Positions 1 through 5,302 are shown, numbered from the stretch's first letter. The stretch is 5,302 nucleotides of DNA from Amoeboradix gromovi X-113 (GCA_018985225.1 JADGIF010000674.1:1-5302), one strand, 5' to 3'. Made by a program: numbers and translations. The notes: generated by a model not told the origin, from the letters alone.

Positions 1-19
1 TAACATTACAAAATGACTC

Positions 20-242
20 TAGAAAAGAGTACCGTCTAAGAAAATGCACCTTTTGCTTAGATGCTCAAAGACCTCATATATTTGAACGAAATGCAGGGTC
101 TTCTAGTATTATTTTGAAAAGAGGAATACAATCAATGAAAGAAAATTGGTATAATAGAAGATCTTTTATTAATGATAGTATTTCCTCCGTATGGTGCACC
201 TTTAAAAACGAGTTAGTCTAGTTTTTATATTTGGTGTCCCAT
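20..242. repeat. Left arm of a long inverted repeat (pairs with 5079-5302)
   Basis: The reverse complement of 5079-5302 aligns to 20-242 with 8 substitutions (left positions 78, 90, 102, 106, 108, 154, 179, 216), a 2-nt indel near 117-120 and a 3-nt indel near 200. Positions 20-77 match perfectly. The outer end is not visible. Confidence 0.97.
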
Positions 243-371
243 CTTGCTACCATTAGATCGAAAAAATTTCTAGCAAGTACTAAAAATTTCGATTACTATA
301 GCTTAAGGTTTTCCTCAGTGAGTCATTACTTCTCAAAGATGTACAGAATTTCTCTTGCACCAGGATTGCTT

Positions 372-386
372 AATAAAATATTTATT
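372..386. terminator. Back-to-back polyadenylation-like signals (AATAAA + at 372-377, AATAAA - at 386-381)
   Basis: Sequence AATAAAATATTTATT. The minus-strand hexamer lies 6 nt beyond the spliced SDR stop. The AT-rich background weakens the call. Confidence 0.5.
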
Positions 387-392
387 GATAAT

Positions 393-1266
393 TCATTGAG
401 CAACTAAGTTTTGTTTTTGATGGAATACAGTCACTAGACTGCTCAAAGCTCTCTTAAATGGAATAAATGGCTGAATGACAACTAAATTAGCACTGAATAC
501 CAAGTGGGTAGTAAAGCCAATGTGGAACATAAGTCTGGGAGCGTCTTTTAAGAATTGAATCCACTGACTTTTGAGCACAATATTGGGGGGATACAGCTAA
601 ATTTAAGAATACATCAGGAACCGCTCCTTCAATAATATCAGTAGTGACAAATCCAGGCTGTATATTAGTGAAATAAAATCCACTACTTTCTAATTCCAGA
701 GCACAAGATTCCAAGTACTTGCTAATCCCTGATTTAGAGCCACTATAGGCACCAATGCCCTTAGTAACAAGATCTGCAGCAATGCTGCTAATGACTACTA
801 TATGGGGATGGCCAATATGATTTGACTTTGCATACGGACAAAACTCGTTTATACAAGCCATTGGAGACAACAAATTTGTTTGCAAGACTTTGAGGTCCTC
901 ACTAAATGCATGTTTACTACCTACTGAGTGAAAGCCGGCAATTCCAGCGTTTAAGATTATTGTATCCACGGGTCCTGCTTTCTCGTGCGCCTTTTTAAAC
1001 AAGTTTTCATATTGCTTGTAATTCGTGACATCAAATACAATAACATACACTGATATGTTATATTTCTTTATCAAATCTTCTTTTACCTCGTTTAAAAGCT
1101 TCTCGCTTCTCGCTGTCAAAATTAAACTTTTTCCATGTTTTGCTAGTTCATATGCTAATGCCTTACCAATACCACGAGATGCACCGGTTATCAAAAACAC
1201 TTTTCCTTCTGGTGGATACAAATACTGCTTGAACTCATCCGATACGGATTTCCAGATTTGCAACAT
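393..1266 (-). CDS. Classical short-chain dehydrogenase/reductase, probably NADP(H)-dependent. Proposed exons 1266-501 and 481-393 (284 aa).
   Basis: Motifs TGASRGIG (TGxxxGxG), ILNAG, catalytic Ser region ISSIAA, YSGSK (YxxxK) and PGFVTT. Arg after beta-2 (TARS) suggests NADP(H). The first in-frame ATG is at 1266; the track start at 1299 is TTG. Unspliced, the frame stops at 487; the 3' exon depends on the 19-nt intron. Confidence 0.92.
482..500 (-). other. Putative 19-nt spliceosomal intron (phase 1) in the SDR gene
   Basis: The minus strand reads GTATTCAGTGCTAATTTAG: GT donor, GCTAAT branch-point-like motif, TTTAG acceptor. It contains the in-frame TAA, and removing it gives ...WLYYPLVVIQPFIPFKRALSSLVTVFHQKQNLVAQ*. 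Confidence 0.7.
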
Positions 1267-1368
1267 TTCCAAACGCCCCCATATTACGAGATACGGCAAT
1301 TTTCATCTCTAGAATGATATTTTGAGCTAATTGCTACATTCTGATGATGCTACTGTGTTTAGGTGTTT
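1267..1368. promoter_or_regulatory. Putative bidirectional promoter between SDR and MTO1 (102 bp)
   Basis: Inferred only from the divergent ATGs at 1266 (-) and 1369 (+). Confidence 0.45.
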
Positions 1369-3264
1369 ATGAGTAGCTTTTACAGTCAGACAAGGGAAAG
1401 GGAGAAAGCGATGAGTGTGATAGTTATTGGAGGCGGTCATGCAGGAATTGAAGCAGTTTGTGCAGCAGCTAGATTGGGATGTAAAGCCATATTAATAACT
1501 CATAAAAAACACACTATTGGTGTTAATAGTTGCAATCCTTCTTGGGGAGGAATCGGAAAAGGTACCTTGATTCGTGAAATTGATGCTCTTGGTGGAGTTT
1601 GCGCTAAAATTGTTGACAAAAGCGGTATAAAATTTAATGTGCTAAATAGATCTAAAGGCAGTGCTGTGTTTGGACCTCGCGCTCAAGTGGATCGTGAATT
1701 ATATCGAATTAATATTTACGAGGAATTAATTAAATATTCCAACGTCTCAATAGTAGAAGGCAGTGTTGAAGATCTGATATTTGCAAACAACGTCATTCAA
1801 GGTGTGAAATTGAGCAATGGTGAATCCATATTTAGTGATGCGACAATTATAACAACAGGCACGTTTTTGCAAGGAAAAATCCAAATTGGAGTAGAGTCGT
1901 TTGCGGCAGGTAGAATGGGAGATATGCCATCATTAAAGCTTTCCAATTCTTTATCCTTGCTTGGAATTAAGCTTTCAAGATTGCGTACTGGGACCCCGCC
2001 CCGCCTTGATCGGAGCTCCATCAATTTCAATGAACTACCATCTTACTCTGGAGAATTACCACCCCTTCCTTTCAGTTTCTTAAATGACTTTGTACATCAG
2101 ACCCAGCAAATTCCTTCTTATCTTACTTTTACAAATCGAAGGACTCATGAAATTATAAATAATAACCTTCATTTAAATAACCACGTTTTGCAGGATACTA
2201 TGGGTCCCCGTTATTGCCCTAGTTTAGAATCGAAGGTAATAAAATTCCCGAGCAAATCAAGTCACCATGTTTGGTTGGAGATTGAAGGCATCAACAGTAA
2301 TATAGTTTATCCAAATGGTTTGTCTATGACTTTTTCTCCGGATACTCAATTAGAAATCATTAGATCGATTAAGGGTTTAGAGGCAGCAAATATCATAAAG
2401 CCGGGATACGGTGTTACTTATGACTACGTAGATCCACGCCAATTAGATTCAACTTTAAAAGTCAAGCATTTGAAACAATTGTACTTAGCAGGTCAAATAA
2501 ATGGTACAACCGGATACGAAGAAGCAGCATGCCAGGGATTGATAGCAGGGTGTAATGCGGCACTAGCAGTACTAAAATTACCCCCTTTTACCTTGAACAG
2601 AGCAGAAGCTTTAACGGGTGTCCTAATTGACGACTTGACGACAAAAGGGGCGGACGAACCTTATAGAATGTTTACCAGCAGAGCAGAATACAGAATAATA
2701 CTAAGAAGCGATAATGCAGATTTAAGACTAACGGAAAAAGGGTATAAAGTAGGCTTAGTAGACAAAGTAAGATTTACAAAAATGAATAACACAAAGACGC
2801 AGATTAACGAAGTTACAAGTGAAATGAAATCAATTCAGTATAGCCCGCATCAATGGAGCGCACTTGGGTTTACAAATGTTGCATTTGATGGGAAAGCCAA
2901 GTCACTGTTTGATAAATATCATTCAATTCCAAATTGCGATTTGTTTAAGTATTTTAGACAGTTCACACGCAGATCTGTTGAGACTTTGGCAAGAGTAAGA
3001 GTGGACTCAAAATACCAAGACTACGTGGAGCTGCTGAGGGAAGAGATAAATTATTTAGAGCTTGAGTCCAAGTTAGAGCTGCCACGGATGGATTATTCAG
3101 TAGTTGGTGGGCTGAGCAACGAGGTAGTTGAGAAACTGAATTCCGTACAGCCTACACATCTAGGGCAAATAAAATCTATTCAAGGAATAACTGGAGACAC
3201 GCCGGGTATCGTTATGAGATATCTAAAGAGTAGAACTTATGCAGAAGTAAATAAATACTTGTGA
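1369..3264 (+). CDS. MTO1: tRNA wobble-uridine (U34) C5 modification enzyme MTO1, MnmG/GidA family, eukaryotic mitochondrial type
   Basis: FAD-binding VIGGGHAG plus SCNPS, TTGTFL, TGTPPRL, GPRYCPS, AGQINGTTGYEEAA and EPYRMFTSRAEYR. The segment NNLHLNNHV before GPRYCPS resembles fungal/animal MTO1 rather than bacterial MnmG. ATG at 1369 (631 aa) or 1411 (617 aa); the track start at 1363 is GTG. Confidence 0.95.
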   Translation: MSSFYSQTREREKAMSVIVIGGGHAGIEAVCAAARLGCKAILITHKKHTIGVNSCNPSWGGIGKGTLIREIDALGGVCAKIVDKSGIKFNVLNRSKGSAVFGPRAQVDRELYRINIYEELIKYSNVSIVEGSVEDLIFANNVIQGVKLSNGESIFSDATIITTGTFLQGKIQIGVESFAAGRMGDMPSLKLSNSLSLLGIKLSRLRTGTPPRLDRSSINFNELPSYSGELPPLPFSFLNDFVHQTQQIPSYLTFTNRRTHEIINNNLHLNNHVLQDTMGPRYCPSLESKVIKFPSKSSHHVWLEIEGINSNIVYPNGLSMTFSPDTQLEIIRSIKGLEAANIIKPGYGVTYDYVDPRQLDSTLKVKHLKQLYLAGQINGTTGYEEAACQGLIAGCNAALAVLKLPPFTLNRAEALTGVLIDDLTTKGADEPYRMFTSRAEYRIILRSDNADLRLTEKGYKVGLVDKVRFTKMNNTKTQINEVTSEMKSIQYSPHQWSALGFTNVAFDGKAKSLFDKYHSIPNCDLFKYFRQFTRRSVETLARVRVDSKYQDYVELLREEINYLELESKLELPRMDYSVVGGLSNEVVEKLNSVQPTHLGQIKSIQGITGDTPGIVMRYLKSRTYAEVNKYL

Positions 3265-3289
3265 ACATTTTTAATTTATTGCGGTTTTG
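3250..3289. terminator. Convergent MTO1/WDR83 3'-end region with AATAAA on each strand
   Basis: AATAAA (+) at 3250-3255 lies inside the last MTO1 codons. AATAAA (-) at 3280-3275 lies 9 nt past the WDR83 stop. The stop codons are 25 bp apart. Confidence 0.5.
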
Positions 3290-4147
3290 TTAGATCCTAG
3301 AATGCAGATTGAGGCATCCGTCCTGGCCGATAGTAGCAAAGCAATTGTCACTATCATGGCAGGATATCGATTGGACTGCACTAGAGTGACATTTGATTTC
3401 ATCGTACACTGTAAAGTCTTGGTTGTAAATTGTAACTACGCCATGCTCATCTCCACTTACAATCTTATCGTCGTTGCACATCAGCCTGCATTTCGAATTG
3501 TTGCTGTATGGTTTTCCTTGGAAAATCCTTGTTAATTTACCATTGTCTCTTTGAATTACCCGAATACAGCCATCTTGACTGTAAGAAAGTAGTTTTCGAC
3601 TAGTTCTAAACAAATCTAAGTCTGTAATGGAAGAGCTAACATTATCAGTTATTAATTTATTGTTCCTCAAATCATATGTCCTGATATTCCCATCCATGCT
3701 AGCTGAAAATATTTCGCTGTCAATTGATTTGACAGAAAGGACGCTATCTTGGGCGTCTTGCAAGGTTTGCACAACCTTGTTCGACCTCAGATCCCATATT
3801 ATAACAGAGCTATCCAAAGACGATGAAAGCAATATATTACTATCATGATAGCTCAAGTCTAATATATGACTCTGATGCCCCTTCAACTTGTTGAAAACCC
3901 CTGTCAGTACGTCCCAAATAAATATATCTTTTTCCTTTCCACCGGAAGCTATTTGAGAATGATTAGGATTGAATTTGTTCGATAGCACTTCATAGGTGTG
4001 TCCCTTGAGCTGTGACAGCACTTTGCCAGATTTAGCAGAGACGATGGAGACAAGGCGATTGTAACCACCGATTGCCAAATACTCAAAGTCAGAGTTGAAC
4101 GACATGCTTGTCAATGGATCATTGCTAATATGAATCTTGCTTCTCAT
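3290..4147 (-). CDS. WDR83: WD40-repeat protein WDR83/MORG1 (285 aa)
   Basis: GH...WD repeats. GHTYEVL, SSLDSSVIIWDLRS, VQTLQDAQDSVLSVK, EIFSASMDGNIRTYDLR and DNVSSSIT are colinear with recalled MORG1 motifs (GHGYEVL, VQTLDEARDGVSSVK, GSVDGRVRRYDLR). ATG at 4147; the track start at 4165 is TTG. Confidence 0.88.
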   Translation of the reverse strand: MRSKIHISNDPLTSMSFNSDFEYLAIGGYNRLVSIVSAKSGKVLSQLKGHTYEVLSNKFNPNHSQIASGGKEKDIFIWDVLTGVFNKLKGHQSHILDLSYHDSNILLSSSLDSSVIIWDLRSNKVVQTLQDAQDSVLSVKSIDSEIFSASMDGNIRTYDLRNNKLITDNVSSSITDLDLFRTSRKLLSYSQDGCIRVIQRDNGKLTRIFQGKPYSNNSKCRLMCNDDKIVSGDEHGVVTIYNQDFTVYDEIKCHSSAVQSISCHDSDNCFATIGQDGCLNLHSRI

Positions 4148-4203
4148 TGTTCTTTGGCTATCCAAGTGTTCGAAAAATAAAGCAAAATGTTGTCTTACAC
4201 TCC
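4148..4203. promoter_or_regulatory. Putative bidirectional promoter between WDR83 and the PSMG4-like gene (56 bp)
   Basis: Divergent ATGs at 4147 (-) and 4204 (+), with a central A-rich tract GAAAAATAAAGCAAAA. Confidence 0.45.
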
Positions 4204-4446
4204 ATGATTGATATAGTCGAGATATCCAAAGACTCTTTCATGGTGTATATTGGGGAGCAAGACCAGGACATCACTAATATGAGCCTCGCCATCAAGGATG
4301 AGTCAACTAACCTAGTCGGCGAAAATGACGAACTGGCAGCGAAATTGGGGAAGAGATTCCAGAAACAATTTATTGTATGCAACCATGTCAAGGATCCCTC
4401 GGTCGATATCGAGGTCTTCCTTAAAGTAAAGGAACTACTGTCGTAA
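4204..4446 (+). CDS. PSMG4: Proteasome assembly chaperone 4-like protein (PAC4/PSMG4 family), 80 aa
   Basis: DSFMVYIG...NMSLAI...STNLVG...LAAKLGKRFQKQFIV...KVKELL follows the recalled PAC4 pattern DSLFLWVG...NLAVAM...STSLLG...LAQRLARKTNKQVFV. First ATG at 4204; AATAAA at 4465-4470. Confidence 0.68.
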   Translation: MIDIVEISKDSFMVYIGEQDQDITNMSLAIKDESTNLVGENDELAAKLGKRFQKQFIVCNHVKDPSVDIEVFLKVKELLS

Positions 4447-4465
4447 TATGACATGGTTTCGTTAA

Positions 4466-5077
4466 ATAAATCTATTAGATTCAACGCTGCAATTTTTTAT
4501 TGACGGAATACTAAAAGTTGAAATTAGCTTCTAAACTTCAAGTGATAAATTACTTCAGCTTATGAGACCTGAACACATGCCCAAAATCTGTCATCATTGT
4601 ATTTTTATGCAATACTCACCATCAGGCGTTGACTCCAAAAACCCTGTGATTTTACTTTAGGAATATGACGAATCTGTTATAGTAGTTCACGGGAAAATCT
4701 GCGAGACAATAGCCTCTAAACATCCACAAATAGGCGTTTTTAAGTGTTGATGGACAGGACCAGTTAAAGATTGGGTTAGACAGAGAACATGATCTGGTAT
4801 GGATCTCTGTTATGACTATCTCATTCAACTATAGCAAAAAGGAAGCTATAGTCAAGTTCGGTGCAATTCATCTTAATGATTTATTCAAGGACAAGTGGGA
4901 AGCTTGTAAAATAGTAAAAGGTTTACTACTTATTACTCTTTAAACATCGAGCTAAACCCACTAGTAGCAAGGACTTCCATCAGCTTTGAAATCTTGCAAG
5001 GATCAGTTCAAGAGGCCAATCTTCAGCCTTGCTTGTCTAATACTAATAAAGACAAGATTAACAAGTTCATTAACTAG
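4466..5077 (+). pseudogene. Possible degenerate coding sequence of unknown family
   Basis: Overlapping open segments: 4466-4747 (two internal stops), 4734-4940 (69 codons, +1 shift near the T5 run at 4737-4741) and 4910-5074 (55 codons, back in the first frame), ending at TAG 5075-5077. Confidence 0.35.
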
Positions 5078-5078
5078 C

Positions 5079-5302
5079 ATGGGACACCAAATATAAAAAC
5101 TAGATTAACTCGTTTTTAAAGAAGGTGCACCATACGGAGGAAATGCTATCATTAATAAAAGATCTTCTACTATACCAATTTTCTTTCATTGATTGTATTC
5201 CTCTTCAAAATAAAAGTAGGAGACCCTGCATCTCGTTCAAATACATGAGGTCTTTGAGCATCTAAGCAAAAGGTGCATTTTCTTAGACGGTACTCTTTTC
5301 TA
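5079..5302. repeat. Right arm of the long inverted repeat, cut by the window end
   Basis: ATGGGACACCAAATATAAAAACTAG...GACGGTACTCTTTTCTA is the reverse complement of 20-242, and the match continues to the last base of the window. Confidence 0.97.

Follow-up and report, generated by a model that had tools for sequence, protein, structure and literature searches.

Four genes enclosed by a long inverted repeat may be cargo of a mobile element, or the repeat may owe its position to something more ordinary. A contig of the early-diverging fungus Amoeboradix gromovi X-113 (GCA_018985225.1 JADGIF010000674.1:1-5302) raises this question, and we analysed the whole of it, 5,302 bp, as one stretch (hereafter the window; contig C960 in an assembly of 10,549,678 bases in 1319 contigs). 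A first-pass annotation, made from the sequence of the window, had described four genes within a pair of inverted arms and offered four explanations: a Pack-MULE-like element carrying whole genes, a miniature chromosome with shared terminal repeats, an invertible segment, or an assembly break at two independent copies of a dispersed repeat. Our analysis points to the last of these. We hold with high confidence that the bracket arose at a short-read assembly break, each arm being the right-end half of a copy of a miniature inverted-repeat transposable element (MITE) that inserted independently of the other, and that there is no four-gene mobile unit or mini-chromosome. The evidence lies in the structure of the repeat, its copy number and occurrence in both orientations, its bias towards contig ends, the single-copy interior, and the continuation of the right-hand end on a second contig, C824.

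The arms belong to a dispersed family and are not a matched pair

The inverted repeat itself is as first described. A repeat search recovered it as three adjoining pairs of inverted segments (20-121/5201-5302, 119-202/5122-5205, and 200-242/5079-5121), and a global alignment of 20-242 with the reverse complement of 5079-5302 reproduced the arms of approximately 223 bp, with 213 of 226 columns identical and the outermost 58 bases perfect. The repeat reaches farther to the left than position 20, as window positions 1-19 also fit the family consensus. The 13 differing columns comprise 8 substitutions, a 2-bp insertion/deletion, and a 3-bp insertion/deletion; a 2-bp deletion breaks the frame of a gene remnant (see below) in the right arm, the translation of which has stops. 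When the extracted copies were ranked by their similarity to each arm, the right arm was only the 38th match of the left arm, and the left arm the 8th match of the right arm. Each arm has closer relatives than the other arm, and the two do not form a matched pair.

Both arms have a great many relatives. A genome search with the left-arm DNA gave 927 first-look candidates, and the 40 that were scored have 94-97% identity, many of them lying at contig starts or ends. With the 71-residue translation of the left arm, 987 first-look candidates were obtained genome-wide, and the E value was 4e-31 or lower for each of the 150 scored. Searched with up to 3 mismatches, a 40-mer taken from the arm occurs 152 times in forward and 142 times in reverse orientation (control, 0), and there are at least 100 perfect copies of it. 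The repeat is therefore scattered over the genome in random orientation, which the first-pass annotation had itself named as an argument against a special four-gene unit. The density is approximately 1 copy per 10 kb in the 10.55-Mb genome, in both orientations.

The repeat is a MITE with a 4-bp target-site duplication

In internal genomic copies, a 30-nt inverted version of the arm's inner end sits 230-480 bp past the arm's outer end. Fifteen copies excised from the genome are complete: they measure 478-729 bp, carry terminal inverted repeats (TIRs; GGGACA...TGTCCC) of 29-30 nt, and have unrelated flanks; a set of 22 complete copies spans 387-726 bp, again with TIRs of 29-30 nt. The window arms align solely to the right-hand half of such complete elements and never to the left half. 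Alignment with 8 complete copies and BLAST of a 486-bp complete copy against the window defined the extent of the left arm (Table 1). Each element terminates on the side of the genes, at 240 and 5081, respectively, because of which the genes lie outside both elements.

The 4 bp beside both ends are identical in 9 of the 22 complete copies, and several others are one base off; permutation gave a mean of 2.9 such matches, and none of 2000 permutations reached 9. On the left, counted from the GGGACA terminus, position -5 is C in 20 of these 22 copies and position -4 is A in 21 of them, and the homology shared by 17 copies ends just past the terminal TGTCCC, save for one conserved flanking A. The family consists of MITEs, the reduced form of a TIR DNA transposon that duplicates 4 bp at its target site. 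The own flanks of the two window arms differ (ATCT on the left, ATGC on the right), and the left ends of both copies lie off the contig.

The family resembles other MITEs in its size below 800 bp, its 29-30-nt TIRs, its short target-site duplication, its approximately 1000 copies, its lack of transposase coding capacity, its location in gene spacers, and its many internal-deletion variants. It differs from them in that a gene remnant can still be recognised in the right half, an unusual trait among MITEs, and in that the assembly yielded no autonomous parent with these ends, either by walking outward in the DNA from the longest variants or by inspecting the open reading frames (ORFs) of the matches. 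The longest open frames across copies are 137-164 amino acids (aa) long and are all remnants, with no Pfam match above the cut-off.

Two kinds of variation were seen within the family. Only some members carry a variable 43-bp segment bounded by AAGAGTA direct repeats (compare window positions 1-42 and 5261-5302); its absence from the others resembles a microhomology deletion, and its loss shifts the frame of the remnant. In addition, a subfamily (represented by C1138 and C660) has another, loosely similar left end and a longer interior and has kept the first zinc-ribbon CxxC. Copies that seemed long enough to be full-length elements were rejected as such, as they are members of this subfamily with its different left end.

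The contig ends where short-read assembly would be expected to stop

At contig ends, copies of the element tend to face inward. Among 100 listed perfect copies of the arm 40-mer, 20 face inward within 160 nt of a contig start, versus 4 that face outward. The contigs with inward-facing copies start at the same element position as the window does, and dozens of contigs end there. The complementary type also exists: in C683 and C822, the left-end half is followed by approximately 55-62 nt of arm, where the contig stops. Two further contigs, C233 (366 bp) and C358 (252 bp), consist entirely of internal MITE sequence and are assembly debris of the collapsed repeat. Both ends of the window fall within the 43-bp segment, just before a stretch of at least 40-58 nt that is identical in at least 100 copies.

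The published A. gromovi assembly (10.5 Mb, 36.3% GC, 1167 contigs) was made from DNA obtained by multiple displacement amplification, with 2x100 reads and SPAdes 3.9.1 in single-cell mode (PMC8371127). The assembly that we analysed matches it in size and GC and is likely the same one. The largest default k-mer of this assembler is 55. A de Bruijn assembler would extend out of unique DNA across the right half of each copy, which is somewhat diverged, and would halt where the family branches, i.e., at the 43-bp segment of some copies, beside the collapsed identical stretch. This mechanism, with k = 55, is a part of the explanation that we infer. It would account for the perfect outer 58 bp and the diverged inner parts of the arms, because the branch adjoins the collapsed repeat node in the de Bruijn graph. 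With a right-end half at either end, the contig inevitably displays a long inverted repeat, the outermost part of which is the near-identical, collapsed stretch.

All features of the locus agree with those of known short-read de Bruijn breaks: the contig ends lie inside a high-copy repeat, at least 100 copies share an identical terminal stretch, and complementary contigs overlap by approximately one k-mer (approximately 55-62 nt); we found no feature that is unlike them. From the fractions of contig ends that fall in the element, roughly 2-17 contigs in this assembly would be expected to be bracketed in this way if the two ends are independent. The suggestion that other contigs might carry the repeat inverted at both ends was borne out by C657 (9358 bp), which is bracketed alike, and only nearly so by C446 (39 kb).

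One transposon family explains a considerable fraction of the places at which this assembly is broken, and any gene-bracketing inverted repeat in it should be presumed to be the same artefact, with C657 as a second example. The four-gene unit within a long inverted repeat, as originally posed, has no significance of its own, since its appearance is set by the position of the assembly break.

The right-hand copy is nested in a retrotransposon relic that continues on another contig

The interior was first described as holding housekeeping genes only, which needs amending: the 338 bp at 4741-5078 are a degenerate Ty3/gypsy pol relic (Table 1), with 72-79% identity to six other loci that are mostly degenerate themselves. 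In the alignment, these six paralogous loci continue into Ty3/gypsy reverse-transcriptase-like sequence at the point where the window switches to the MITE end, and the right-hand MITE has therefore inserted in a retrotransposon relic. The paralogous sequence that directly follows the insertion point was then used to query the genome. A matching relic continuation is present on C824 (6504-6667, minus strand), and directly after it, at approximately 6669-6758, a MITE left end (element positions 1-115) runs to the end of that contig. Collinearity with the paralogues holds for both the window relic and the C824 flank, and no more than a few bases at the junction are unexplained. C960 and C824 are very probably genomic neighbours, with approximately 150 unassembled element bases between them, and judging from this collinearity the right end of C960 and the end of C824 most likely constitute one MITE nested in a relic of approximately 500 bp. 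The right end of C960 continues on C824, and a physical chromosome end is therefore excluded there. Besides the explanation of the bracket, this join between C960 and C824 is what the window contributes.

Several points weigh against this reading of the locus. The C960-C824 insertion lacks a perfect duplication, its flanks being ATAT and ATGC; about half of the other copies likewise lack one. We infer the junction from its collinearity with the paralogous copies of pol rather than from reads. For the left end, the partner contig was not identified, since the left flank is unique sequence without paralogues. Finally, the assembly analysed here has 1319 contigs, versus the 1167 of the published assembly on which the account of the break draws.

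Other explanations of the bracket

We considered whether the block could be invertible, i.e., whether recombination between the approximately 94% identical inverted copies flips the 4.8-kb block in some cells. Two inverted repeats of approximately 480 bp that lie 4.8 kb apart are a possible substrate, but nothing else speaks in favour of inversion. The assembly holds one orientation only, and the interior has no ORF for a transposase or recombinase, in agreement with the first-pass annotation, which had recognised neither. Moreover, hundreds of such pairs must exist from the copy density alone. Inversion at this locus is thus very unlikely.

We give still less credence to a composite or Pack-type unit, in which the outer left ends of the two MITE copies would jointly mobilise the four genes. 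Any two neighbouring TIR copies could in principle supply outer ends, and here the outer ends lie off the contig. However, the arms are halves of two small elements with the genes outside them, and 243-4740 has no second match anywhere in the genome. This interior is therefore single-copy, and the second locus of the four genes for which the first-pass annotation had advised a search was not found in the assembly. The arms differ from each other in 13 of the 226 columns and have nearer relatives elsewhere in the genome; the right-hand copy is nested in the gypsy relic, with the other half of the relic directly outside the same copy, which amounts to a single ordinary insertion; and at approximately 1 copy per 10 kb, bracketing by chance is expected. 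An element that carries whole genes, as in the Pack-MULE-like proposal, does not fit these data.

A miniature linear chromosome or replicon with shared terminal inverted repeats can practically be dismissed: the repeat does extend to both contig ends, but neither end has telomere-like repeats, both fall midway along an element of which complete copies exist elsewhere, at a position where dozens of contigs end, and the proposal is refuted at the right end by the relic and the MITE left end on C824.

A possible Fanzor origin of the family

The gene remnant in the left arm (Table 1) is the 3' end of what was formerly a gene of the element, and its open frame stops 19 nt short of the element terminus. 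The remnant consensus has a CxxC followed by ERDAGSSxFILKRG, to which longer copies add an upstream DYTSKKCSVC. These motifs resemble the zinc-ribbon and the last RuvC motif with which TnpB, Cas12f, and Fanzor proteins end. The ERD of the family is changed to ERN in the left arm (window positions 87-89), so that the would-be catalytic aspartate of a TnpB-type RuvC domain is replaced, which fits a decaying remnant.

Two longer remnant fragments match the Pfam TnpB/Cas12f zinc-ribbon family PF07282 with E values of 6.5e-4 and 2e-3 (20.2 and 18.6 bits; cut-off, 26.3 bits). The window's own 71-aa fragment has no Pfam match, searches of the remnant against PDB sequences, including profile searches, returned nothing or noise, and hhalign of the remnant against an intact TnpB-like ORF from the same genome gave a probability of 0.3%. 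Genome searches with PF07282 and NF040570 recovered a different abundant family and two long ORFs (on C542 and C459). These two TnpB-like ORFs are not bounded by the repeats of the MITE family, and no full Fanzor locus with these repeats was found.

The different family is also of high copy number and is unrelated to the MITE: it is present at C542:1557-2843 and in approximately 560 other places and carries clear TnpB/Cas12f zinc-ribbon remnants that match PF07282 with up to 74 bits. The TnpB-like ORF on C542 scores 119.7 bits on NF040570; it measures 590 aa in the stretch examined and 672 aa as an open frame in the genome.

A comparison can be made with the Spu-1 "ghost" Fanzor loci of Spizellomyces punctatus, which are approximately 550 nt long with 30-nt inverted repeats and lack the nuclease ORF (Saito et al. 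2023, PMC10432273). The ghosts number 134 loci and have a conserved CA upstream of the 5' repeat and a guide-RNA region at the right end (PMC10432273). The MITE family is similar in its 29-30-nt repeats, in the CA that precedes the left end in 20-21 of the 22 copies, and in a right half that holds the tail of a candidate zinc-ribbon protein, the PF07282 matches of which are sub-threshold. It differs in a copy number that is several-fold higher (approximately 987 candidates versus 134), in its clear 4-bp target duplication, in a TnpB-type signal of the remnant that lies below the Pfam cut-off, and in that no matching full Fanzor locus was found. A consensus fold of 17 arms has 60 predicted pairs with 0 compensatory changes and thus offers no covariation support for a guide-RNA fold; an Rfam search and a tRNA scan gave no match.

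Taken with the sub-threshold PF07282 matches, the ghost-like architecture suggests that the MITE family may derive from a Fanzor/TnpB-carrying transposon, which we consider its likeliest origin. The family forms a very dense population of MITEs in a 10.5-Mb early-diverging fungus, at approximately 1 copy per 10 kb, and its architecture is like that of Fanzor ghost loci. It would be a long shot to suppose that inward-facing ends of such Fanzor-type ghosts yield guide-RNA-like transcripts into the gene block, or that the inverted copies invert the block occasionally. If either were true, pairs of this kind, at the same density, would shape gene order or expression in a very compact genome.

Genes and other features of the window

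Neither element includes any of the four genes, which are ordinary host genes present in single copy; they are compact, and no introns were detected in them. As intact genes, the short-chain dehydrogenase/reductase (SDR), MTO1, and WDR83-like assignments of the first-pass annotation stand on Pfam and PDB matches (Table 1). For the WD40 protein, WDR83 is the sole natural protein in the PDB that matches over nearly the full length (2.2e-37, residues 12-273). The fourth assignment, to PSMG4, is less secure, as the PAC4 match of 26.8 bits is below the curated cut-off of 31 bits; the closest protein-atlas clusters for this small ORF carry PAC4, with scores of 0.83-0.84 that serve as leads only.

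Table 1. Positions of the features in the 5,302-bp window (TIR, terminal inverted repeat; CDS, coding sequence).
Feature	Position	Strand	Remarks
Left arm, right-end half of MITE copy 1	1-240	+	Approximately 247-486 of the 486-bp copy; TIR 212-240; terminus 240 towards the genes
3'-end remnant of the element's former gene	3-221	+	71 codons and TAG stop (219-221); CxxC and ERD-like motif
SDR	487-1299; first ATG 1266 (CDS 487-1266)	-	Pfam adh_short 3.2e-38; single-copy
MTO1/MnmG (GidA) tRNA-modification enzyme	1363-3264; first ATG 1411	+	Pfam GIDA 9e-143, SAM_GIDA_C 6e-12; single-copy
Seven-bladed WD40 protein, WDR83/MORG1-like, 285 aa	3290-4147	-	WD40 beta-propeller Pfam matches
Small PAC4/PSMG4-like proteasome assembly chaperone	4204-4446 (frame open from 4147)	+	Pfam PAC4 5.4e-6
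Degenerate Ty3/gypsy pol relic, stretch just before the reverse-transcriptase start	4741-5078	+	Cut by the right-hand MITE
Right arm, right-end half of MITE copy 2	5081-5302	-	Approximately 266-486 of the 486-bp copy; TIR 5081-5109; terminus 5081 towards the genes

The genes are packed extremely tightly. The start codons of SDR and MTO1 are 144 bp apart (1267-1410), the convergent MTO1 and WD40 genes have 25 bp between their stop codons (3265-3289), and 56 bp separate the start codons of the divergent WD40 and PAC4-like genes (4148-4203).

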